The position numbers and the translations under genes were made by a program. A stretch of 64,000 bases of DNA, taken from positions 371,846-435,845 of the forward strand of contig NW_005434628.1 in assembly GCF_000315625.1 (NCBI RefSeq). Direction: 5' to 3'. This stretch comes from Guillardia theta CCMP2712. Lineage: Eukaryota; Protista; Cryptophyta. Of the stretch, positions 5,652 to 58,750 are shown in pieces. Under the pieces are notes generated by a model that did no database searches, was not told where the DNA came from, and worked only from the letters and a program-made list of their open reading frames with translations. Positions within the stretch are counted from its first letter, which is position 1; each line of letters starts with the position of its first letter.

Positions 5652-5940
5652 GGAGGACTCCTGTATTTCCCCCACTGCCCTATGCCTCCCATCATACCAA
5701 AGTTTACTCAAAGTCACTTGGGTCGTCATGACCACAGCTATCCATCAATAATAGTTTTACAAATGCCCAATCGTCGCGTTCTAGCCTCCTTCGGCCTCCC
5801 TTCCCGAAAAGCAGCTTGATGACTCCCCTTCGCAAGAAGCTTCTAAACCCCCTCTATCTCCCTGTAAGCCCTTACCAGACCCCCGCATCGCTCCTCTACT
5901 TCATCCCTCCCCTTCCCTCCTCTCCTCCCCTACCGCAGCC

Positions 5941-6309
5941 ATGCCCCACGCCTCGCCCTCGCCCCCGACCTTCTCCATCGCCCTCGTCAGCCTCTCCCTC
6001 TCTCGCGCCTCCTCCCCCGCTGCTGCCCGCCCTCCCCGCGCCTTCAAGCTCTCCTCGTCCCAGCAAGCCTACGTCGACGCCCACAGCCCGCCGTCGGAGC
6101 CGAGACCGGAGCAGGACGAGCTGCAGGAGCTGCAGCAAGACAAGGGCCCGAGCAAGCGAGTCAGCGTCAGCTCGGCTGGGCGGGAGCTGCTCCAGGGCGT
6201 CCTCGAGGCGAGGAAGGCCCGGGCTACAGCGCGCACGTCGAAAAGGGGTAGGAGCTGGAGGGAGGAGATGGCGAGGGCAGAGCCGCTGGAGGATCTGCCT
6301 AGTGCGTGA
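5941..6309 (+). CDS. Unknown intronless small protein, SQQAYVDAH family, copy 1 (122 aa)
   Basis: ATG-started ORF; this frame is conserved in the diverged paralogs at 55563-55880 and 57128-57484. Confidence 0.7.
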   Translation: MPHASPSPPTFSIALVSLSLSRASSPAAARPPRAFKLSSSQQAYVDAHSPPSEPRPEQDELQELQQDKGPSKRVSVSSAGRELLQGVLEARKARATARTSKRGRSWREEMARAEPLEDLPSA

Positions 6310-6494
6310 TCATAGGAGTCGAGTTGTAGAGCAGCATTCTTGTACGGGACCTGTAGAGTAAATACCTTCGTGATGCTACCCATGACTTCCATACTATCAA
6401 AAGTTTCATGGCGAGACTGACGGAGGCGAGTGTATGATTACCTACATGCTGCATGAGCTGACAGAGAAGGTCAGGCGTTGATTATCTGATCATT

Positions 6495-6765
6495 CTTTAT
6501 GCTACAGCTATTTGCCCCCGGCCTTCTCAATCGTCCTCGTCAGACTCTTGCTTTCTCGGCTCCCCACGCCGTTTGGCTCTCAGAGACTCCCCATCCCAGC
6601 AAGCCTACGTCAACACCCGCCGACCTCCTTCAGAGCCTCTGCCCAAGGGGGAGGAGGTAAGGAAAGAGCAGGGGAGTCAGGGTCAGGTCTACTGGGATGG
6701 ATTCGTTGATTGCCGAGGAACGATTGTTCGGATTCGGAATCCTCCCACGCACAAGCAACGGCTTC
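6495..6765 (+). pseudogene. Degenerate partial copy of the SQQAYVDAH-family gene
   Basis: Retains ccttctcaatcgtcctcgtcag and cccagcaagcctacgtcaac (AFSIVLV and SQQAYVNT) but in different frames. Confidence 0.55.
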
Positions 6766-7356
6766 ACTAGCCTGACAACTGATGTCGGGCCGCCAGACAC
6801 TCCAGGCTCAGTGGACGGAGAAACTGACCCTGGTAGCTCATGCTGCAAGAAAGCAGGGACGTGCTTGTGTCCAAGTCAGGTCGGACAGCCCTCAAAACCG
6901 AGGAAATGACCACAGAACAAAGAGGAATAACGATCATGCGAAGAAAGATCTTGGCACCCTCCCCTCCCCCGACCTACCACCCCCCCCACCCCATTGCGTT
7001 TTCCCGGGCTCAAACCTTAGCCAGTCCGTAGTAGCCAAGAGTTCTGGTTTGAGAGCTGTCGATGGTCAGCCAGGAGGACTCAGAAAGGTTATGAATCACT
7101 TACACCGAACCAGGACATCCCCAAGTAGCGTGACGTTATGGGAGATGCCTCACAGCCATGACTAGACTGAGGAAAAAACGATCTACACTCCCCACATTCT
7201 ACACCGGGATATCAAATGTCGCAGCCCCTACCCCCCCCAGCCCCTCTGTAAAAAGCTTCTAAACCCCCTCTATCTCCCTGTAAGCCCTTACCAGACCCCC
7301 GCATCGCTCCTCTACTTCATCCCTCCCCTTCCCTCCTCTCCTCCCCTACCGCAGCC

Positions 7357-7722
7357 ATGCCCCACGCCTCGCCCTCGCCCCCGACCTTCTCCATCGCCCT
7401 CGTCAGCCTCTCCCTCTCTCGCGCCTCCTCCCCCGCTGCTGCCCGCCCTCCCCGCGCCTTCAAGCTCTCCCCGTCCCAGCAATCCTACGTCGACGCCCAC
7501 ACCCCACCGTCAGAGCAAACGCCCAGGAAGCAAGACGAGCTCCAGCAAGACAAGGGACCGAGCAAGCGAGTCAGCGTCAGCTCGGCTGGGCGGGAGCTGC
7601 TCCAGGGCGTCCTCGAGGCGAGGAAGGCCCGGGCTACAGCGCGCACGTCGAAAAGGGGTAGGAGCTGGAGGGAGGAGATGGCGAGGGCAGAGCCGCTGGA
7701 GGATCTGCCTAGCGAGATGTAA
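7357..7722 (+). CDS. Unknown small protein, SQQAYVDAH family, copy 2 (121 aa)
   Basis: Near-identical to 5941-6309; indels between copies keep the frame. Confidence 0.7.
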   Translation: MPHASPSPPTFSIALVSLSLSRASSPAAARPPRAFKLSPSQQSYVDAHTPPSEQTPRKQDELQQDKGPSKRVSVSSAGRELLQGVLEARKARATARTSKRGRSWREEMARAEPLEDLPSEM

Positions 7723-7819
7723 AGCAGCATTCTTGTACGGGACCTGTAGAGTAAATACCTTCGTGATGCTACCCAAAGTTTCATGGCGAGACTGACGGAG
7801 GCTGATCTGATCATGTCCT

Positions 7820-8085
7820 ATGCTACAGCTATTTTCCCCCGGCCTTCTCCATCGCCCTCGTCAGACTCTTCCTTTCTCGGCTCCCCACGCCGTTTGGCTT
7901 TCAGAGACTCCCCATCCCAGCAAGCCTACGTCAACACCCGCCGACCTCCTTTCAGAGCCTCTGCCCAAGGGGGAGGAGGTAAGGAAAGAGCAAGGGAGTC
8001 AGGGTCAGGTCTGCTGGGATGGATTCGTTGATTGCCGAGGAACGATTATTCGGATTCGGAATCCTCCCACGCACAAGCACCGGCT
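7820..8085 (+). pseudogene. Degenerate partial copy of the SQQAYVDAH-family gene
   Basis: Duplicate of the 6495-6765 segment. Confidence 0.5.
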
Positions 8086-8543
8086 TCAGGGAGGCTTCGT
8101 GGAGTCGCTGGAGGACGTGACGGAGATGGCGAGGGCAGAGCGGTGGGCGTAGGAGAGGAGGTAGCAGAGGAGTGTACAGTAGAGACCCCTTTCAGTCTTG
8201 GGGAGCGTGTAGAATAAAGCCAAGGCTGACGCAGCCGTCTTGTTGCTGACCGGGAGTCGATGTTGGGGTCTCGGCACCTCTCATGCCTCATACCTGCAGC
8301 TCCTCTGAGGGGTCAAGACCTGCCAGAGCGATACCGAGGCTGGCCAGAGGTACGTCGCCAGGCGTGCGATGCTGTCCCGCCTGTCAAGTCCAGACTCCTT
8401 GAAGCTCACGGACACAGAGATAGGAGGGAGGGAGATTGGGAGGGAGGTGCAGGTGTGGAAGCGAGATCGCTATGCCTAGCCGTCGGGTCGAGGCTGCCTG
8501 CATGGTTTTATTCTCAGCAGACAATCTCATCACCTCCATATCT

Positions 8544-9125
8544 CTACTGCTCGCTCGCTTCCCCCCTGCCTCGCTCTCTCGCTCCCGGTCTCTCCTCGCC
8601 CGCAGCCCTCCAGTCCTGTCCTCTCCTCGCCAGCTGCTGGAAGTACTTCTGCGCATGCGAGCGGACCTGGGCCTCGTCGCGTGTGCCTATGGCTTGGGCG
8701 ATCTTCCTCGCTGCTCCTCGTCCCAGCCCGACTCGCAGCCTCCCCCCGCTGTCCCTCACGCCCGTCTTGCCGCGACGTCGGGTGGACACGTGAGCATGGA
8801 GGGCGGTGAGGAAGCGGTCATGCTCCTCCGAGGTCCACATGCGGCGAGGGACGGGGCGGTCGTCGCTGCTGCCGCCATCAGACCTGGAGGGAGAGGAGCT
8901 CGATGATGTTGGGGCGGTCGGGTAGCAGCAGTCGAAGAGGGAGGATAGGGGCTGGCCAGTCAGAGTGGCTTTGTGTGCTGCAGAGAAAGATGAAGCGGGA
9001 GAGTAGGGGGAGGAGTCTGGGGAGGGGGAGGGGGAGGGGGGAGGGGAGGGGGAGGGGATCAGATAGGAGGGATGGACATCGTGGGGATAGAGGGCAGCAA
9101 CGGAAGCATCCACCGACATCGTCAT
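8544..9125 (-). CDS. SHAQKYF-class Myb transcription factor, copy 1
   Basis: WTSEEHDRFLTAL...IAQAIGTRDEAQVRSHAQKYF; in-frame ATG at 9125 (MTMSVDASV). The C-terminus could be extended by splicing. Confidence 0.85.
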   Translation of the reverse strand: MTMSVDASVAALYPHDVHPSYLIPSPSPPPSPSPSPDSSPYSPASSFSAAHKATLTGQPLSSLFDCCYPTAPTSSSSSPSRSDGGSSDDRPVPRRMWTSEEHDRFLTALHAHVSTRRRGKTGVRDSGGRLRVGLGRGAARKIAQAIGTRDEAQVRSHAQKYFQQLARRGQDWRAAGEERPGARERGRGEASEQ

Positions 9126-9530
9126 CGCACAACGGACGGACAAGGAGGATGGAAGTGGACTTGAGGAAAGGAGACTAGAACTTTGCAGGAGCAGGGCATG
9201 TCTCAATAGACAACGATTGGAGAGAGACGACGTGTGGCTAGCAAAAGGCAACGCATGAACGTCGCAACCCTTGGAGGAGCTGCGGTTTGAGGGATAAGTA
9301 GCGTGATATTCTGGGGATAACGATTTCGGTATCGTGACGAAACAAGGGGAGGAAGCTCAATCGTTGCGTTCTAGCCTCCTTCGGACTCCCTTCCCGAAAA
9401 GCAGCTTGATGACTCCCCTTCGCAAGAAGCTTCTAAACCCCCTCTATCTCCCTGTAAGCCCTCACCAGACCCCCGCATCGCTCCTCTACTTCATCCCTCC
9501 CCCTCCCTCCTCTCCTCCCCTACCGCAGCC

Positions 9531-9917
9531 ATGCCCCACGCTCCCCCCCCGCCCCCGACCTTCTCCATCGCCCTCGTCAGCCTCTCCCTCTCTCGCGGCT
9601 CCTCCCCCGCTGCTGCCCGCCCTCCCCGCGCCTTCAAGCTCTCCCCGTCCCAGCAAGCCTACGTCGACGCCCACAGCCCGCCGTCGGAGCAAACGCCCGA
9701 GCAGGACGAGCTGCAGGAGCTCCAGCAAGGCAAGGGCCCGAGTAAGCGAGTCAGCGTCAGCTCGGCTGGGCGGGAGCTGCTCCAGGGCGTCCTCGAGGCG
9801 AGGAAGGCCCGGGCTACAGCGCGCACGTCGTCGGGGAGGAGCTGGAGGGAGGAGGGAGGCTTCGTGGAGTCGCTGGAGGACGTGACGGAGATGGCGAGGG
9901 CAGAGCGGTGGGCGTAG
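9531..9917 (+). CDS. Unknown small protein, SQQAYVDAH family, copy 3 (128 aa)
   Basis: Same core as copies 1 and 2 with an alternative C-terminus (GGFVESLEDVTEMARAERWA). Confidence 0.7.
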   Translation: MPHAPPPPPTFSIALVSLSLSRGSSPAAARPPRAFKLSPSQQAYVDAHSPPSEQTPEQDELQELQQGKGPSKRVSVSSAGRELLQGVLEARKARATARTSSGRSWREEGGFVESLEDVTEMARAERWA

Positions 9918-10306
9918 GAGAGGAGGTAGCAGAGGAGTGTACAGTAGAGACCCCTTTCAGTCTTGGGGAGCGTGTAGAATAAAGCCAAGGCTGATGCAGC
10001 CGTCTTGTTGCTGACCGGGAGTCGATGTTGGGGTCTCGGCACCTCTCATGCCTCATACCTGCAGCTCCTCTGAGGGGTCAAGACCTGCCATGGCGATACA
10101 GACGCTGGCCAGAGGTACGTCGCCAGGCGTGCGATGCTGTCCCGCCTGTCAAGTCCAGACTCCTTGAAGCTCACGGACACAGAGATAGGAGGGAGGGAGA
10201 TTGGAAGCGAGATCGCTATGCCTAGCCGTCGGGTCGAGGCTGCCTGCATGGTTTTATTCTCAGCAGACAATCTCATCACCTCCACAATCTCATCACCTCC
10301 ATATCT

Positions 10307-10888
10307 CTACTGCTCGCTCGCTTCCCCCCTGCCTCGCTCTCTCGCTCCCGGTCTCTCCTCGCCCGCAGCCCTCCAGTCCTGTCCTCTCCTCGCCAGCTGC
10401 TGGAAGTACTTATGCGCATGCGAGCGGACCTGGGCCTCGTCGCGTGTGCCTATGGCTTGGGCGATCTTCCTCGCTGCTCCTCGTCCCAGCCCGACTCGCA
10501 GCCTCCCCCCGCTGTCCCTCACGCCCGTCTTGCCGCGACGTCGGGTGGACACGTGAGCATGGAGGGCGGTGAGGAAGCGATCATGCTCCTCCGAGGTCCA
10601 CATGCGGCGAGGGACGGGGCGGTCGTCGCTGCTGCCGCCATCAGACCTGGAGGGAGAGGAGCTCGATGATGTTGGGGCGGTCGGGTAGCAGCAGTCGAAG
10701 AGGGAGGATAGGGGCTGGCCAGTCAGAGTGGCTTTGTGTGCTGCAGAGAAAGATGAAGCGGGAGAGTAGGGGGAGGAGTCGGGGGAGGGGGAGGGGGAGG
10801 GGGGGGGGGAGGGGGAGGGGATCAGATAGGAGGGATGGACATCGTGGGGATAGAGGGCAGCAACGGAAGCATCCACCGACATCGTCAT
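10307..10888 (-). CDS. SHAQKYF-class Myb transcription factor, copy 2 (SHAHKYF variant)
   Basis: Near-identical to 8544-9125; Q>H change in the recognition helix; ATG at 10888. Confidence 0.85.
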   Translation of the reverse strand: MTMSVDASVAALYPHDVHPSYLIPSPSPPPSPSPSPDSSPYSPASSFSAAHKATLTGQPLSSLFDCCYPTAPTSSSSSPSRSDGGSSDDRPVPRRMWTSEEHDRFLTALHAHVSTRRRGKTGVRDSGGRLRVGLGRGAARKIAQAIGTRDEAQVRSHAHKYFQQLARRGQDWRAAGEERPGARERGRGEASEQ

Positions 10889-11112
10889 CGCACAACGGAC
10901 GGACAAGGAGGATGGAAGTGGACTTGAGGAAAGGAGACTAGAACTTTGCATACTAGCCTCCTTCGGACTCCCTTCCCGAAAAGCGGCTTGATGACTTCCC
11001 TTCGCAAGAAGCTTCTAAACCCCCTCTATCTCCCTGTAAGCCCTCACCAGACCCCCGCATCGCTCCTCTACTTCATCCCTCCCCCTCCCTCCTCTCCTCC
11101 CCTACCGCAGCA

Positions 11113-11505
11113 ATGCCCCACGCCCTCCCCCCGCCCCCGACCTTCTCCATCGCCCTCGTCAGCCTCTCCCTCTCTCGCGCCTCCTCCCCCGCTGCTGCCC
11201 GCCCTCCCCGCGCCTTCAAGCTCTCCCCGTCCCAGCAAGCCTACGTCGACGCCCACAGCCCGCCGTCGGAGCCCAGACCCGAGCAGAACGAGCTCCAGCA
11301 GGACGAGCTCCAGCAAGGCATTGGACCGAGCAAGCGAGTCAGCGTCAGCTCGGCTGGGCGGGAGCTGCTCCAGGGCGTCCTCGAGGCGAGGAAGGCCCGG
11401 GCTACAGCGCGCACGTCGTCGGGGAGGAGCTGGAGGGAGGAGGGAGGCTTCGTGGAGTCGCTGGAGGACGTGACGGAGATGGCGAGGGCAGAGCGGTGGG
11501 CGTAG
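11113..11505 (+). CDS. Unknown small protein, SQQAYVDAH family, copy 4 (130 aa)
   Basis: Near-identical to 9531-9917. Confidence 0.7.
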   Translation: MPHALPPPPTFSIALVSLSLSRASSPAAARPPRAFKLSPSQQAYVDAHSPPSEPRPEQNELQQDELQQGIGPSKRVSVSSAGRELLQGVLEARKARATARTSSGRSWREEGGFVESLEDVTEMARAERWA

Positions 11506-11890
11506 GAGAGGAGGTAGCAGAGGAGTGTACAGTAGAGACCCCTTTCAGTCTTGGGGAGCGTGTAGAATAAAGCCAAGGCTGACGCAGCCGTCTTGTTGCT
11601 GACCGGGAGTCGATGTTGGGGTCTCGGCACCTCTCATGCCTCATACCTGCAGCTCCTCTGAGGGGTCAAGACCTGCCAGAGCGATACCGAGGCTGGCCAG
11701 AGGTACGTCGCCAGGCGTGCGATGCTGTCCCGCCTGTCAAGTCCAGACTCCTTGAAGCTCACGGACACAGAGATAGGAGGGAGGGAGATTGGGAGGGAGG
11801 AGCAAGAGCGAGATCGCTATGCCTAGCCGTCGGGTCGAGGCTGCTCGCATGGTTTTATTCTCAGCAGACAATCTCATCACCTCCATCTCT

Positions 11891-12427
11891 CTACTGCTCG
11901 CTCGCTTCCCCCCTGCCTCGCTCTCTCGCTCCCGGTCTCTCCTCGCTCGCTTCCACTGCCGGTCTCTCCTCGCCCGCAGCCCTCCAGTCCTGTCCTCTCC
12001 TCGCCAGCTGCTGGAAGTACTTATGCGCATGCGAGCGGACCTGGGCCTCGTCGCGTGTGCCTATGGCTTGGGCGATCTTCCTCGCTGCTCCTCGTCCCAG
12101 CCCGACTCGCAGCCTCCCCCCGCTGTCCCTCACGCCCGTCTTGCCGCGACGTCGGGTGGACACGTGAGCATGGAGGGCGGTGAGGAAGCGGTCATGCTCC
12201 TCCGAGGTCCACATGCGGCGAGGGACGGGGCGGTCGTCGCTGCTGCCGCCATGAGACGTGCAGGGAGAGGAGCTCGATGATCTTGAGGTGGTCGGGTAGC
12301 AGCAGGCGAAGAGGGAGGATAGGGGCTGGCCAGTCAGAGTGGCTTTGTGTGCTGCAGAAAGCGAGGGAGCGGGAGAGTAGGGGGAGGAGGAGGGCGAGGT
12401 CGAGGGGGGCCTTTCCCCAAACAGCAA
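11891..12427 (-). CDS. SHAQKYF-class Myb, copy 3 (SHAHKYF; divergent 5' end, possibly a pseudogene)
   Basis: Myb domain intact; the nearest upstream ATG (12440) is out of frame with it. Confidence 0.6.
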   Translation of the reverse strand: MLFGERPPSTSPSSSPYSPAPSLSAAHKATLTGQPLSSLFACCYPTTSRSSSSSPCTSHGGSSDDRPVPRRMWTSEEHDRFLTALHAHVSTRRRGKTGVRDSGGRLRVGLGRGAARKIAQAIGTRDEAQVRSHAHKYFQQLARRGQDWRAAGEERPAVEASEERPGARERGRGEASEQ

Positions 12428-12599
12428 CGCGTCCAGGCATGAGATATTTGACTAGGAAACTGCAACGCTTCCGTAAGAAGATTCTCGACTCAGTGACTTG
12501 GAAAAGACAACGCATGAATGTCGCAACTTGGCAACCGTCGGGCCTTGGAGCCGGGGCAGTGGATAGATGATAGTATCCGAAGTTTGCCAAGTACACTCA

Positions 12600-13110: not shown

Positions 13111-15392
13111 ATGGCAGCGGATCGGAGATGTTTGGCGACGTTGGCGCTTGCCATGGTCGCTGTGTGCAGAACTAGCGCTTATGCTCCTTCAGTGATGGTG
13201 AGAGATGGAATGTTTCCTGTCATGTTGAGTCTGATAACATCTATGTGTGTGTGTTTGGTGACTTGAAGAATTAGTTGGAATATTGTGATCATTCTTGATG
13301 TGAAGTCCAACCAGCATAAAAATTGTGTCTGCTGACAGAGACATGTGTATGGTTTCTCGTTTGAAATGGTTTTTAATCTTCAACGCTGTCTGCACACTCA
13401 CTGGTGCTGTAGCCTGGCCTCCAGCGGGTTAGAACCAAGGGAGCTGGACTTCAAGGTAGGATGCGCTTGTTCACAGGAATCCCGCATTCCAGCAGAGCAA
13501 ATCTCTCCCCGGCATTGCGAATGTCTGATGGGAAAGCGTCAACAAGCTCCGAAGTCGACTTTGTCGTCGTTGGTTCTGGTCTTGGCGGCCTCAGTGCCGG
13601 TGCGCTACTGGCAAAGTACGGGTACGACGTCACTGTCTGCGAGTCCCACTATCATCCTGGAGGGTGTGCGCATGGCTTCGAGATCAAGGACAAGAACTCG
13701 GACGACATCTTCAAGTTCGATGCTGGGCCGTCCCTGTGGGCCGGCATGTCTGAGCCTTCAACGAACCCGCTTCGGCAGGTGATGGATGCTGTTGGGGCAC
13801 AGGTAGAGTGGAAGAAGTACGACGGGTGGGGAGTGTACTTCCCCGATGGGTACTTCCGGTTCAACGTTGGGCCTTCCGATCAGGCTGGAGGCTTCGAGGA
13901 CGTGATAAGAAAGTTTGGAGGGCCCGGTGGAAGCATCCAGGAATGGAAGAAACTACAAGAGATTATCAAACCTCTGATCCTCGCTTGTACCACTTTCCCT
14001 CCGATGGCCCTCCGAGCCGACCTTGGCGTGCTCAAGACGCTGTCCAAGTACCTTCCTACATTCCTCTCCTTTGGACCAGCCGCGGCAACGATCAACGGGC
14101 CCTTCTCGGCAGTGATGAAACAGGCGGGGATTAGGGAGGGGACCTTTCTTTGGCGATGGCTGGACTACCTCTCCTTCGCTCTCAGTGGGCTCCTGGCGGA
14201 CGGGACCATCTGTGCTGCTGTCTCCTACACCCTGGGGGATCTGCACAGGAAGGGATCACTGCTGGACTATCCTGTGGGAGGAAGCGGCGCAGTTTGTGAG
14301 GCCCTTGTCCAGGCGATGGAGAGGAATGGAGGAAAGCTCCTGCTCAAGACTCCCGTGCAGGAGATCCTGATCAAGGATGGCCGAGCGGCGGGGGTGATCA
14401 CCAAGGGGGGGGACACCATCCTCGCTCGCAAGGGCGTGATCAGCAACGTGCCGGTCTGGTCGCTCCCCAAGCTGCTGCCCGACGAGTACTCGACCTTCTC
14501 CTTCGGGGGCCTGTGGCAGGAGAACCACAACACCAGGGGTCTCAAGGAGGATTTGAAGAAGACGCCGCAGACAGAGAGCTTCATGCACCTCCACCTAGGT
14601 ACTCCCGTTGCTGCCTTTCCTCTTGACCCGTCCTCCCTCCCTCCCTCCCTCTCTCCCTCCCTCCCTCTCTCCCTCCCTCCCTCTCTCCCTCCCTCCCTCC
14701 CTCCCTCCCTCCCTCTCTCCCTCCCTCCTCTCTTGGGACTGACGCGCTTCGAAGGGATCGATGGCAAGGACCTCAAGGACCTCGACATCCACTACACGGT
14801 GACTCGCTGACTCCTGGAGGAGCTGCAGCTGACGGAGGCTTTGCAGGTGATCAACGAGTGGGAGAGCGGCATCGACGCCCCCGGCAACATGATTGTTATC
14901 TCCATCCCCACCGTCCTTGATCCTTCCCTCGCCCCTCCAGGCAAGCACGTCGTCCACGCCTACACCGCCGGCAACGAGCCCTACGACCTGTTCGAGGGGA
15001 TGGACCGGAACTCGGACAAATACAAGCAGCTCAAGAAGGAGCGAGCGGAAGTCCTGTACAAGGCTGTCGAGAAGGTCATCCCAGACCTCAGGGACAGGAT
15101 CCAGGTCGAGCTCGTCGGTTCTCCCCTCACGCACGAAAGGTATCTCAGGAGGCCCCAGGGCACCTACGGCCCGGCATGGCGAGCAGGCAAGAACTTGTTC
15201 CCCGGGCCCGGGCTTGCCAAGGTACCTGGCCTCCTCTGCTGCGGCGACAGCGTGTTCCCGGGGATCGGAGTCCCTGCTGTGGCGGCGTCGGGGCTAACGG
15301 CAGCGAACAGCATGGTGTCGGTAGGGGAGCACGTGGAGCTCTTGCAGGAGATGAAGAAGGGAGGGCTGATGCCAGATCAAGTGATGGTCTGA
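13111..15392 (+). CDS. Plastid-targeted carotenoid isomerase-like (CrtISO/phytoene desaturase superfamily) FAD oxidoreductase
   Basis: Exon 1 (13111-13197, MAADRRCLATLALAMVAVCRTSAYAPSVM) splices GT..AG in frame to 13413. Motifs: DFVVVGSGLGGL (FAD), FDAGPSLWAG, YPVGGSGAVCEALV, PTVLDPSLAPPGKH, GSPLTHERYL, CGDSVFPGIGVPAVAASG. Confidence 0.85.
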
Positions 15393-53694: not shown

Positions 53695-55395
53695 CTACAT
53701 CTGGCTCCTCTTTATCCTACTCCCTCCTCCGTCCTCCCTTATCCTCTTCCTCCTCTTCCTCCTCACTGCTCTTCCTTCAGATCAGCGACCACCAGAAGAA
53801 GATCGACAAGGAGCAGCAAAAGCTCAAAGAGTCGGTAAGACTGACCAGCTGCTGCACAACCGAGGATACCACCTTCCTCCCTCCTTCCCTCCATCACTCC
53901 CTCCCTCCCTCCCTCCCTCCCTCCCTCCCTCCCTCCCCTGTGACTCTGGGGCGTCAGGTCGCCAACATCAAGGATCAATTCCTCGTGAGGGGAGGGGTCA
54001 ACCACCTCGAAGTCCTCCAGAGGAACGTGTCTGACTGCGACAGGAAGCTTAACGCTGTTCTCAAGCTCCTCCTCTCTTCCTCCGACAAGTCGGCAGTGGG
54101 GGAGGAGGTTCTGAAGAAATTTTCCCTCGACAGCCTCCTCAGCCTCGTTCCTCAGCCTCCGACGCACGAGGAGAGCAGGAAACAAGTTCCCATCACCACC
54201 CTCCTTCCCGTCCAGTCCTCCGGCCTCTCCCCTCTCCGCAAGGAGCGAAAGGTTCGAAGCCAGCGCACGCCCAGCTCAGAGAAGAGTTTGCAGTCCCTGG
54301 AGGCGAGAAAGGAGGCGATGTCCAGCATCAGCATCTCCAGCGACTTCGTGCATCTGCTGCAGAACGAGGAGGAGGAGGAGGAGGGGAGGAGAAGGTCGAG
54401 GGAGATGCATGACGAGGAGGAAGGGGGACGGCAACAGTTTGTGACCCATCTGGACTCTTGCGGCCTCACCATGATCAAAGTTCCGCGCAACCTGATCAAC
54501 ACAAGACTACTGGGCGCCCCTGCAGACAGCAACGAGGTCTCTCCTCCTTCCTGCAACCTGCCTATTTCTTCCTCCTCCTTCTCTTGTCTCCTNNNNNNNN
54601 NNNNNNNNNNNNNNNNNNNNNNNNNNNNNNNNNNNNNNNNNNNNNNNNNNNNNNNNNNNNNNNNNNNNNNNNNNNNNNNNNNNNNNNNNNNNTTCTCCTC
54701 TCCTCTCCTTCTCCTTCTCCCTCCTCCTCCTCCTCCTCCTCCTCCTCCTCCTCCTCCTCCTCCTCCTCCTCCTCCTCCTCCTCCTCCTCCTCCTCCTCCT
54801 CCTCCTTTCCTCACGTATCCATTCCCAAGGAACCTGGTCATGAACGAGGCTGCTGCCTTCCTTCCCTCAACCGTCAAGGTCTTAGAATGAGCCCTTTGTC
54901 CCCCTGCCTCACTTTCTTACCAGTTGGATCCAGCAACGATCAGGATTCTTGATAAGGTGCCGCTACTGTTGCTTCCCCTCTTCCCGTTATGCTTCATCCC
55001 CCTCCCCTTCAACTCCTCTGCCTTTCCTTGTTCTTCTCTCTTCCTCGCTCGTCCACCTCCCCCCCCCACAAAAAAAACTCGAGCTCCCTTCCTCTTCTCC
55101 ACTGCTTCTTCCTTGTTTCTCCTCCTCTGCCTCCTCTTTTGTCTCCTCGGAGCTTCAACTCCTCCATCCCCTCACGACCTGCCTTCACCTCGCATGTCCT
55201 TCTAAATGCGTTTACCGTCCTTGCTCATGCTTCAACAGTCTGTCCTCTTCCCATCTCTTACCCTCCTTTCCTCCAATTTTCCTCACGCTCTCGTTCTGCT
55301 CTTTAGTTTCAGCAGCTGGACTAGGCTTGGAATCAAAGCACAATTCAAGGAAAAGCATATCAGGTGTCTCTTTTGCCCGAACACATCTCCGATGA
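51070..55395 (+). CDS. Single-domain (6TM) voltage-gated cation channel with N-terminal PH-like domain and C-terminal EF-hand (EukCat-like)
   Basis: PH-like FEIMT..GYNAGRSYCFRT...RDLWVEFL; S1-S3 including WRIFDFL; S4 RLIRVFRAVK; pore ALFTMFTVCTGDGWAE; S6 GIVLVNVVVAVLLDEF; EF loop DKDDSGFLSFKE; coiled tail. 3' end uncertain because of an assembly gap. Confidence 0.85.
54593..54692. other. Assembly gap (100 N)
   Basis: Run of n. Confidence 1.
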
Positions 55396-55562
55396 TAGTC
55401 ATACAAGAGATGGTTGAGTGTGCGTATTCAGCTAGAGGTAACATCCCCGTATTTTACTCACTCTATGTAAACAAAGGAAGCATACATGCCTTCATGTCGA
55501 TCGTATTACTCCCCTACATGCTCGTATCGCCGTCTATGGTACATTCAACCCTCCACTCGCAC

Positions 55563-55880
55563 TCATTCCCCCAGACGCTTCTCCCTCACCCCAGCGCTGA
55601 TCTCCGCCTCCCGCTGATGGCTCTCCTTGATATGCTTGGTCCGTCTGGGGCTGCTGGCTCTGACTCTGGTCAGCTCCTGCATCAGCTGCCACCCGTCCGA
55701 CCTCACTCTGATGGCCTTGCCCGCGCTCGCTGCCTCCTCCTCCAGCGTGCAGACGGGAGTATGGGCGTCAACGTAGGCTTGCTGGGATGGGGAGAGCTTG
55801 AGAGAGCGGGCAGCAGGGAGGGAGAGGGAGAGGTCAAGGAGGGAGATAGAGAAGGAGGGAGGAGGAGAGGAGCGTGTCAT
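55563..55880 (-). CDS. Unknown small protein, SQQAYVDAH family, diverged copy 5 (105 aa)
   Basis: PPSFSISLLDLSLS, LKLSPSQQAYVDAHTP and KAIRVRSDGWQLMQ align with the array copies. Confidence 0.7.
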   Translation of the reverse strand: MTRSSPPPSFSISLLDLSLSLPAARSLKLSPSQQAYVDAHTPVCTLEEEAASAGKAIRVRSDGWQLMQELTRVRASSPRRTKHIKESHQREAEISAGVREKRLGE

Positions 55881-56210
55881 TGCTGTGCAGGGTGTGCGTG
55901 GGAGGGAGGAGGGAGGGGAGGTTGAGCTGGTAGCGTGTCAGATGTTTATCAGGTGCCAAGTTGATCCCTCCAAGATACCGGGAGACGTATGTGGCTAGAT
56001 ACCGCAACGGTTCGTCGAAGTCCGAGAAACGAAACGTTGCGATCTGCCAATGTAGCTCTTTTATTACGACCTTTTAGACGAAACGGTGCTTGTTCACCAC
56101 CCAGACTCTTTGCTCCTTGCGCTAGCGGGCCTGTAAGCTCGAGCGAGGGGTCCGTGACCGTCTGACCGGCTAGACGCGACAGCAGTAAAGAATCTACCTG
56201 AAGGTGACTT

Positions 56211-56650
56211 ATCAGCTACTTTTACTCAAAGTTGAGTTAAAGTTCAGTACCAATTATTCCTCTACTCTCCTGCTTGTCCGCACACTGACTTTTAACTTAA
56301 CTCTGTTGAGTAAACGACTGATGTACCAGTCACATGGCTGTGAGCGACAGCCAGTAACTGACTCACTGATCTTTACTCAAAGTTAAGTGAAAAATCAGTA
56401 CGAGGACAATCAGGAGAGTCGAGGAGGCTTGACCCTGACACTGTCGCACAGGCCAAACGTCGCACAGGCCAAACGGCGAGAAGAGAAAAGACAGCGAGAA
56501 CCAAACACTAGTCAGTCTCGTTTAACTTTACTCAAAGTTAAGTTATACATCAGTACGAGGACAGCAGGAGAGCAGAGGAGGACTTGACCCTGACCGTCCC
56601 TGTCCGATCGCACAGGCAATACGGTGAGCAGAGAAAAGACAGCGAGACTG
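56211..56650. repeat. ~150-bp imperfect tandem repeat (TTTACTCAAAGT core) with an embedded inverted repeat
   Basis: Core at 56221, 56372 and 56527; inverted arms at 56211-56248 and 56284-56322. Confidence 0.8.
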
Positions 56651-57127
56651 TCTTCAACACGAATCTCATTTACAAGCCTCTTGTTGAGGGCGTCCTCCTC
56701 GCATCCTCCATCCCTTTCACGCTGAGTCTTCATCTGCTCTCCTGTTTCAGCAGCTGCAGTAGATTTGCAATCAAACACGCACATACATCGGACCACTCAG
56801 TACATGTACAGCCCAATCACTGCAGGGCCGACGACGACAAGATCGGGACAAAGAGAGCTCGACGCCAACCATCAGGCTGGAGCATGGCATGAGCCCTCTC
56901 TGCTCGACCCTTGAGCACTGAACATTCCCTCGCACTTCCCGTCATCAGCTCAACTATGTCTGGGGTGATACAAGAGATGGTTGTGTGCGTATTCAGCTAG
57001 AGGTAACATCCCCGTATTTTACTCACTCTATGTAAACAAAGGAAGCAGACATGCCTTCATGTCGATCGCATTACTCCCCTACATGCTCGTATCGCCGTCT
57101 ATGGTACATTCAACCCTCCACTCGCAC

Positions 57128-57484
57128 TCATTCCCCCAGACGCTTCTCCCTCACCCCAGCGCTGATCTCCGCCTCCCGCTGATGGCTCTCCTTGATATGC
57201 TTGGTCCGCCTGGGGCTGCTGGCTCTGACTCTGGTCAGCTCCTGCATCAGCTGCCACCCGTCCGACCTCACTCTGATGGCCTTGCCCGCGCTCGCTGCCT
57301 CCTCCTTCAGCCCGCGGACTGGACCCGCGCTCGCTGCCTCCTCCTCCAGCCTGCAGACGGGAGTATGGGCGTCAACGTAGGCCTGCTGGGATGGGGAGAG
57401 CTTAAGAGAGCGGGCAGCAGGGAGGGAGAGGGAGAGGTCAAGGAGGGAGATAGAGAAGGAGGGAGGAGGAGAGGAGCGTGTCAT
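57128..57484 (-). CDS. Unknown small protein, SQQAYVDAH family, diverged copy 6 (118 aa)
   Basis: Duplicate of 55563-55880 with a 13-aa internal repeat. Confidence 0.7.
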   Translation of the reverse strand: MTRSSPPPSFSISLLDLSLSLPAARSLKLSPSQQAYVDAHTPVCRLEEEAASAGPVRGLKEEAASAGKAIRVRSDGWQLMQELTRVRASSPRRTKHIKESHQREAEISAGVREKRLGE

Positions 57485-57789
57485 TGCTGTGCAGGAGGGA
57501 GGGTCGAAGGTGGCGCTGCTGTATAAAGAGCAAACAGGTCGGAACGGAACGCTGTGCTACGTCTCTGGCTCTTTATGACTCAACGAAACGGTGCATGTTG
57601 TGTAGTCACCAGTTTGCTCCTGACCCTCAGCCTGTAAGCTTCCATTCGATGGCCACGTGACAGCACCGGGGTGCTTTTGCCAAAGGTCGTGTCCTCGCAT
57701 CTTTTTGCGTAAAAGTCGGATATCACGGTCCGGGGGCCTGGTCATTTGTAGGGCCTGTGCGATTCATTGAATCTTATCCGAACAGCTGA

Positions 57790-58750
57790 GTGTTGTCGGA
57801 CGTCCGGGCCGGCGACGGTAAGTAGCACCCGGAGCTTCCGGCGACCGCCGCACGTCGGACCGTACTCTCCGAGTGACCCGGGCCGTCTGCCAACGTGTCA
57901 CGGACAGTCGGACCGTACTGAGTGACTCCGAGTGACGGACTGGCGGCGCGGCGCCCCTGCGGCTGAGGCGGTTAAACTTTGGCGGTAAAAAAAAGGGTCC
58001 GACACTGACTCGGTTACGGGCCCGGCGGCCTCCGAGTGGCCGCGTGACGGCCGGGCCGGGCGGCGCCGGACCGAGGTTGGCCGGATCCGATCATCCTGCC
58101 CGGTTCGGCCGGGCCCGGCGTCGCCGGAGTCGCCGTACGGTATGAAGGCAGGCAGTATCAGGTTCACGGGTGGCAGGAGCGGTCAGTACCGTACCGTACC
58201 GCACGCCGCCGTACGGTACGCCCGGCTGGGATGATTCAGTCTACACGGTCAACACCCGGGGGCCTGGCAGCCGGCCGCTCCCTTGGCCGGGGCCCGCCGG
58301 GGCCGGCCGCCCGCCCGGCGGTGCCCGCTCGCCCCCGGGCCGCCGCCCGACCCACTNNNNNNNNNNNNNNNNNNNNNNNNNNNNNNNNNNNNNNNNNNNN
58401 NNNNNNNNNNNNNNNNNNNNNNNNNNNNNNNNNNNNNNNNNNNNNNNNNNNNNNNNCGGCGCGGTAGGACGCCTTGGGGTGCAGGGCTGGTCGCCTAGGT
58501 AAGAGGTGTGGAGTTGGCAGCGTGGAGTGCGCGAGGGCGGGGTGGCTCTTCCCTGCTCCGCGTCCGAAAGGGAGCGTGGTCTCTGTCGAGAGCGCACGGC
58601 CCTAGGCCGTGTCTCGCTGGGCTGGCTCGGTCTGGCGGAAGGGGGGGGGGCCGCCGGCGCGGCGGGGGCCGGGGCCCGCACGCCCGCCGGCCCGCCGGCC
58701 CGGACTCACTGAGTGAGTCAGGGCCTCGCCGCAACTTGCCTGGCTGACGG
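57790..58750. promoter_or_regulatory. Large GC-rich CCGG/GTACGG/TGAGTC-word island (contains a 100-N gap at 58357-58456)
   Basis: Same vocabulary as the other islands; directly abuts the retrotransposon LTR. Confidence 0.4.

Follow-up and report, generated by a model that had tools for sequence, protein, structure and literature searches.

A 64,000-nucleotide stretch of the nuclear genome of Guillardia theta CCMP2712 (contig NW_005434628.1; hereafter the window, C46:371846-435845 in our numbering of the contigs) contains a short tandem array in which a gene for a small hypothetical protein lies next to a gene for a Myb-type protein. The question raised by this locus is whether the two genes were amplified together as parts of one functional system or only as neighbors that happened to share a duplicated block. 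Based on our data, which include searches of the 87.1 Mb assembly in its 669 contigs, we favor the second answer: with a probability of about 0.75, the locus is a tandemly arrayed gene cluster of an ordinary kind, whose neighboring genes were duplicated jointly through unequal crossing-over and whose copies have since begun to diverge and decay. All gene calls given below are single uninterrupted open reading frames (ORFs), and neither spliced models nor stop-codon read-through were used.

Organization of the array

Self-BLAST and a repeat search revealed four direct head-to-tail units of 1.4-2.2 kb, which together span 6.6 kb and hold four copies of the small gene and three of the Myb gene (table 1). 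The alignments among units are 0.5-1.5 kb long, with E=0, far above chance. Three segments can be told apart, namely A with the small ORF, C with the Myb and B, and their order along the array is [A B X][A B C][A C][A C-truncated], where X stands for the spacer found in the place of the Myb in unit 1. Both flanks consist of unremarkable single-copy DNA in which oxidoreductase genes are found, and the direct repetition of a gene-bearing unit between such unique flanks is what characterizes a tandemly arrayed gene cluster.

Much of the layout given in a first-pass annotation of this DNA is borne out by the ORF coordinates. In each of the last three units, a plus-strand small ORF converges with a minus-strand Myb, with some 390 bp from stop to stop, and the small ORFs, announced as ~120-130 amino acids (aa) long, encode 121-130 aa. 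The two complete Mybs lie head-to-head with the small ORF that follows them, as had also been noticed, the start codons being 405 and 224 bp apart. Both genes were described as intronless, and each is indeed a single uninterrupted ORF, colinear with Hanusia phi proteins from EukProt, a transcriptome-derived set. Moreover, homology at 92-96% continues unbroken through the small ORF and the Myb in units 2-4, therefore the two genes were duplicated together as one block, in agreement with the co-amplification originally suggested.

The copies are not nearly identical, as had been claimed: units are 86-96% identical to one another, with a synonymous divergence (dS) of 0.02-0.16. They also differ in structure. 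Unit 1, said to contain the small ORF only, does lack a Myb and has unique DNA instead, but it carries in addition a broken fragment of a second small gene, located in segment B. A similar fragment is found in segment B of unit 2. This second small-gene copy retains motif 2 of the family in frame (the four family motifs are described below), has motif 1 out of frame and is missing motif 3. In unit 1, SPSQQAYV is the sole motif in frame, and in unit 2 the C-terminal motif FVESLEDVTEMARAERWA and SPSQQAYV are in different frames. The alternative that segment B is an intron of the small gene was rejected, as its junctions are homologous diverged coding sequence without splice sites and the segment itself carries a degenerate copy of the family. 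In units 1 and 2, the small ORF ends in a diverged form of motif 4; the small genes of units 3 and 4 look like recombinants, in which the first copy was joined to the tail of the second. Compared with unit 3, unit 2 has an extra 168 bp upstream of the Myb (9188-9354), and a 41 bp patch of this extra sequence is found again in the right flank. At the other end, the homology of the array stops at 12408, within the part of the last Myb gene that encodes the N-terminus; this Myb is left without the N-terminal motif and without its native ATG.

These features would be accounted for if two adjacent single-exon genes had been copied as a block by unequal crossing-over. The ancestral order was likely small-a, small-b, Myb. 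Units 3 and 4 would then have acquired an a/b recombinant small gene with the loss of segment B, unit 1 would have lost its Myb, and the Myb of unit 4 would have been cut by the array boundary, so that copies of the array would now be in the course of being gained and lost. Signs of decay are the truncated Myb, a change from Q to H at a nearly invariant position of the recognition helix in two of the three Mybs, and the frameshifted fragments in segment B. Because of this decay, the dosage selection proposed in the first-pass annotation is doubtful; the ratio of nonsynonymous to synonymous substitution rates (dN/dS) of the small ORF within the array, 0.5-0.9, is also hard to reconcile with it.

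Table 1. Positions of the array, of its genes and of related loci (coordinates are those of the window unless a contig is named)
Feature	Position	Strand	Remarks
Whole tandem array	5765..12408	.	Four direct units; flanks unique in genome
Segment A (small ORF)	5765-6267, 7241-7677, 9355-9854, 10946-11442		Copies 91-95% identical; self-BLAST, repeat search
Segment B (units 1, 2 only)	6268-6766, 7678-8088		411-500 bp; 79% identical to each other
Segment C (Myb)	8088-9187, 9853-10950, 11441-12408	-	91-96% identical; self-BLAST, repeat search
Unit 1 spacer in place of Myb	6767..7240	.	474 bp, single copy in genome
Small-family gene, unit 1	5941..6309	+	122 aa; motifs 1-3, diverged C-terminal motif; P0003
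Small-family gene, unit 2	7357..7722	+	121 aa; C-terminus diverged
Small-family gene, unit 3	9531..9917	+	128 aa; all four family motifs; P0001
Small-family gene, unit 4	11113..11505	+	130 aa; all four motifs; P0002
Segment B of unit 1, degenerate second small-family fragment	6268..6766	+	Profile match E 3.5e-6; open frame 6462-6767
Segment B of unit 2 and following tail, frameshifted small-family fragment	7678..8152	+	Profile search, translation
Myb copy 1	8544..9125	-	193 aa from MTMSVDASVAALYP; intact, SHAQKYF; PF00249 25.8 bits
Myb copy 2	10307..10888	-	193 aa; intact, SHAHKYF; AlphaFold2 domain pLDDT 76-91
Myb copy 3	11891..12427	-	5'-truncated at array edge (homology ends 12408); SHAHKYF
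Unlinked small-family paralogue, first of tandem pair	55563..55880	-	105 aa; Myb absent nearby
Unlinked small-family paralogue, second of tandem pair	57128..57484	-	118 aa; Myb absent nearby
Small-family ATG-ORFs, 105-155 aa	C10 (7), C151 (6), C30 (inverted pair), C86, C96, window 55.5-57.5 kb		
Myb clusters (examples)	C21:110903-115421, C61:238324-244264, C132:43567-50517, C365, C204		
Looped Mybs, metagenome contigs Ga0105051, Ga0315899	L038:450-2255, L039:1565-2569, L040:714-1733, L041:203-1264		

The two gene families outside the array

The relationship between the two genes was examined at the other loci where either of them occurs. Searches of six-frame translations with profile hidden Markov models covered nine other Myb loci, where they detected no ORF of the small family, and eight other loci of the small family, where they detected no Myb. 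Adjacency that recurs at paralogous loci, as would be seen in a conserved gene pair, was therefore found at 0 of 17 G. theta loci. Additionally, 80 environmental contigs (371 kb) encoding related Mybs contain no small-family ORF. The genome-wide lists of the two families overlap only at this array, at its unplaced fragment C665 and at C96, where the small-family and Myb matches are 71 kb apart. In fact, each family occurs in arrays of its own from which the other is absent. Since each family multiplies alone elsewhere and never beside the other, the array is best understood as the product of ordinary local duplication and not as a new two-gene system. The regulator/partner module put forward in the first-pass annotation had been tied to linkage at other loci and loses its ground with these results.

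Alternative explanations

The alternative that survives best is an assembly artefact, either because one or few units were wrongly expanded by the assembler or because the true array is bigger. Two unplaced scaffolds, C660 (3029 bp) and C665 (1082 bp), consist mostly of N and carry at their ends pieces of the array unit with 92-100% identity. The assembled copy number is therefore uncertain, and the array region is probably not completely resolved in the assembly. Moreover, a protein from a 1991 nt ENA contig (P0006) is a complete Myb of 191 aa, 88-91% identical to the Mybs of the window and nearest to the truncated copy 3; this ENA protein is not encoded anywhere in the G. theta assembly searched. 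It could represent an unassembled copy or a copy of another strain; the real array may exceed the assembled one in size, or there may be variants between alleles or strains. However, there are no N runs within the array, and the assembled units differ from one another by 4-14% in sequence as well as in structure (segment B, the spacer of unit 1, the additional 168 bp of unit 2 and the truncated end), so that they are distinct sequences and not a single unit counted repeatedly. An artefact thus seems unlikely to us.

A functional module, in which the small disordered protein would be a partner, co-regulator or target of the Myb and both would have been co-amplified for balanced dosage, is in our opinion distinctly unlikely. 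Several observations speak for it or weigh against our interpretation of the array as an ordinary cluster. The small ORF and the Myb were duplicated jointly, in a single block. The 224-405 bp between the start codons of the head-to-head genes could accommodate a shared promoter. Guillardia and Hanusia are the only two genera in which full-length relatives of both families were found, and the small protein is predicted to be disordered and carries conserved short motifs, a frequent combination in binding partners. Furthermore, only four substitutions, of which three are synonymous, separate Myb copies 1 and 2 (dN/dS 0.12), which indicates that these two copies are still constrained and could function together with their neighbors. 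Against the module stand the lack of linkage at the 17 other loci and on the environmental contigs, the independent array formation of each family, the dN/dS of the small ORF and the fact that the ratio of small genes to Mybs is not kept, unit 1 having no Myb and unit 4 only a truncated one. A functional partnership gains no support from this balance, and the two genes most likely lie side by side only incidentally.

Very unlikely, in turn, is a specific form of the same idea, by which the small protein would be a dedicated co-factor of the Myb, such as a phospho-regulated adaptor or repressor acting through LVDLSLS and L-S-P-x-Q, and the pair a newly born module amplifying from a shared divergent promoter.

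Finally, a non-autonomous mobile element or its cargo, comparable to the Myb-like gene and second ORF of PIF/Harbinger elements, is barely credible and the corresponding suggestion of the first-pass annotation is largely refuted: although both families are multicopy and occur on many small unplaced scaffolds, neither terminal inverted repeats nor long terminal repeats were found at the ends of units or array (only polypurine low-complexity matches), the genome search recovered the unit only in this array and as pieces on the two gapped scaffolds, the flanks and the spacer of unit 1 are single copy, the small ORF has no transposase or other Pfam domain, and the strict head-to-tail order is that yielded by unequal crossing-over.

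The array thus read as an ordinary tandem cluster, it is of little importance as a two-gene system, as local duplication seems to have produced the pairing as a by-product. The two families are of some interest in themselves, as modest annotation-level novelties.

The small-protein family

The small protein was initially regarded as an orphan. This holds in that a profile search of 1.84 billion representative proteins retrieved only 13 members of the family (hypothetical proteins of G. theta, proteins of Hanusia phi and three proteins from ENA contigs), so that within this collection the family appears restricted to Guillardia and Hanusia. It does not hold in that the gene is no singleton: a six-frame protein search of the G. 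theta genome gave about 25 matches. Four Hanusia phi proteins of EukProt (P0004, P0005, P0013 and P0019) are colinear with the small protein and carry its motifs, and exact models for the small proteins of units 1 and 3 already exist in NCBI, UniRef and EukProt. We found no description of the family in the literature searched.

Four conserved motifs define the family. Motif 1, at the N-terminus, is SFSISLVDLSLS; motif 2 is RP.P.FKLSPSQQAYVDA, in which L, S, P, Q, A and D are invariant or nearly so; motif 3 is (A/V)VRV.S.G.EL(M/L)..V(M/L)EARK; and motif 4, at the C-terminus, is W...F.ES(F/W)EDVT. The dN/dS between paralogues ranges from 0.3 to 0.8, which suggests weak constraint outside the motifs. 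A core of 110-160 bp of segment A recurs genome-wide and retains the ATG and the reading frame, therefore it corresponds to the conserved N-terminus of a protein family. The possibility that this core is a non-coding repeat or RNA was rejected, given that the ATG and frame are kept across copies and that an Rfam search of the array returned no RNA family. Judging from these patterns of conservation, the small ORFs, annotated merely as hypothetical, represent a real Guillardia/Hanusia gene family and not chance ORFs in GC-rich DNA.

No Pfam family matched any of 20 members, and no DDE transposase domain was found among them. Scores in the ESM Atlas were at chance level (<=0.81) and a metagenome scan for relatives gave no match. 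The AlphaFold2 model of the protein has a predicted template modeling score (pTM) of 0.23 and shows only short helices over motifs 2, 3 and 4, according to which the protein would be mostly disordered. We infer that it acts through short linear motifs, namely the strand-like LVDLSLS at the N-terminus, the invariant L-S-P-x-Q, R-V-x-S-x-G and an amphipathic helix; the conserved serines of the L-S-P-x-Q and R-V-x-S-x-G sites could be phosphorylation sites. A signal or targeting peptide was also considered and is unlikely, because the hydrophobic N-terminal stretch is interrupted by a central aspartate in most paralogues.

The unlinked paralogues have been amplified in more than one manner. In the window itself, 44 kb from the array, a two-copy tandem duplication at 55418-57495 has a period of 1565-1604 bp and 98-99% identity. 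On contig C10 (233000-242999 and 243000-252000), seven genes of the family are embedded in direct and inverted nested repeats with 96-99% identity and arms of <=430 nt, an architecture unlike the head-to-tail array described here.

The looped Myb family

We aligned the Mybs of the window with Hanusia phi P0007, G. theta P0008 and P0009 and 11 further genomic paralogues. The alignment reveals a gene with a single ORF of ~170-190 aa whose true start is MTMSVDASVAALYPHDVHPSYL. In its product, the N-terminal motif S(V/I)DDAVAALYP.DVHPS is followed by a linker rich in Ser and Pro, then by the Myb domain and finally by a short tail, GRDWR. Pfam PF00249 is matched by each of the 18 family members in the alignment (best E 1.2e-7), and the three Mybs of the array exceed its cut-off of 24.4 bits with 24.8-25.8 bits. 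The match is divided into two stretches by 22 residues between helices 1 and 2, HVSTRRRGKTGVRDSGGRLRVGLGRG, which are kept across the family, including the Hanusia protein. These residues are coding and not an intron, because they are retained in the Hanusia EukProt proteins and in MMETSP-supported G. theta models; no GT...AG pair of sensible length that would keep the frame is available for an in-frame intron. The position of the second tryptophan is occupied by an alanine, in GRGAARKIA. The Mybs of the window are therefore atypical members of the SHAQKYF class of Myb DNA-binding domains, without the compact ~50-residue repeat of regularly spaced tryptophans or aromatics. To this extent the original designation as an atypical SHAQKYF Myb is correct, but only copy 1 has SHAQKYF in the third helix; in copies 2 and 3 the sequence is SHAHKYF, the second H replacing a Q that is nearly invariant in the family, and copy 3 is truncated.

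The AlphaFold2 model of copy 2 has the three-helix Myb/SANT fold, with helices at residues 99-112, 138-146 and 151-168, a loop at 113-137 between the first two, and predicted local distance difference test (pLDDT) values as given in table 1. Foldseek placed the model nearest to the DNA-binding domain of ARR1, RAD (RADIALIS) and PHR2, with probabilities of <=0.98 and all E values >0.1; the best sequence match in the PDB is EhMybS3 (6nvz, E 2e-12). By analogy with other SHAQKYF Mybs, we infer that the domain, with its extended loop between helices 1 and 2, would use helix 3 to bind DNA.

This family is much larger than the small-protein family. Six-frame searches gave 102 matches in the G. theta genome, mostly in tandem or inverted local clusters (C21, C31, C49, C61, C74, C80, C91, C132, C204, C365 and others), many of them on small unplaced scaffolds. 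The array on C21, for example, is composed of three copies with 99% identity and a period of 1990 bp, and a small-family gene is absent from it. Four of the Mybs on the 80 environmental contigs share the loop, therefore the Myb subfamily is wider than Guillardia and Hanusia. These environmental proteins are longer (335-600 aa) and follow the pattern G.RV.VGLGPGVAEVIAVVVGTR..SQVRSHAQKYF, and one of them (L038) also carries the N-terminal motif, as SVDDAIASLFP. Neither the looped Myb family nor its expansion to more than 100 matches was found described in the literature searched.

The Mybs of the array seem to be unannotated: a collection of 15 billion proteins has no exact match to the 193 aa product of copy 1 (8544-9125), and a word search with the longer 214 aa ORF of copy 2 gave no identical or near-identical G. 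theta model. An MMETSP source is recorded for the C21 paralogue P0009 but not for the proteins of the array copies. Within the N-terminal coding region of the Mybs there are GGGGAG-type hexamer microsatellites (9005-9057 and 10760-10820), which encode on the minus strand the PSPSPPPSPSPSP tract and vary in length among the copies.

Other features of the window

A (CCTC)n microsatellite of ~100 bp at 14632-14733 is read as LPPSLPPS in a 449 aa ORF for a FAD-dependent oxidoreductase (13461-14810) and probably marks an intron or a low-complexity insert. The window also contains two assembly gaps of 100 N each, at 54593-54692 and 58357-58456, one of which adjoins a long homopolymer tract coding for poly-proline/poly-glycine.

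Comparison with known systems

Tandemly arrayed lineage-specific genes are commonplace, hence the statement of the first-pass annotation that no described system resembles the array was too strong. The closest parallel is offered by tandem arrays evolving by birth and death, with which the array shares head-to-tail units, graded divergence, a truncated edge copy, internal recombinant and broken copies, and unique flanks. It differs from them in that two unrelated lineage-specific families, convergently oriented, happen to be represented in the duplicated block.

PIF/Harbinger elements also pair a Myb-type gene with another ORF in a repeated unit, whereas the G. theta unit lacks a DDE transposase, terminal inverted repeats and dispersal. 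A partnership between the two G. theta genes would most resemble the RAD-DIV-DRIF modules of plants, in which small SHAQKYF-type or related Mybs act through small interacting proteins. The small protein has no homology to those partners, which are not known to be genomically linked or co-amplified.

As for the Myb itself, it shares with the SHAQKYF MYB-related proteins (CCA1/LHY/RVE, DIV/RAD and EhMybS3) a single repeat, a W-x2-E-E-H-x2-F-L helix 1, a SHAQKYF helix 3 and the three-helix fold. The G. theta family departs from them by the 22-residue loop between helices 1 and 2, the replacement of the second tryptophan by alanine, the N-terminal motif SVDDAVAALYP.DVHPS, its very short proteins (~170-190 aa) and its more than 100 matches.

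In its loop the family resembles the TEA/ATTS domains (TEF-1/TEAD), which have a helix 1-2 loop of similar length and share with it G(K/R)-hydrophobic and GR features. The profile of the Myb family aligns contiguously to TEF-1 (2hzd) and TEAD4 (5gzb), with E values of 8e-4 to 2e-3, whereas a classic SHAQKYF Myb aligns in two pieces only. On the other hand, the G. theta Myb has SHAQKYF in helix 3, no TEA signature and no YAP-binding domain, and matches to the Pfam TEA domain (PF01285) remained below threshold in 6 of the 18 family members (best E 0.0016), the copies of the window giving no match. The looped Myb may be an intermediate between the Myb and TEA domain types, or its loop may be a result of convergence. 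A family of more than 100 matches in which a long TEA-like loop occurs together with SHAQKYF in helix 3 could bear on the relation between TEA and Myb domains and on the diversification of transcription factors in cryptophytes.

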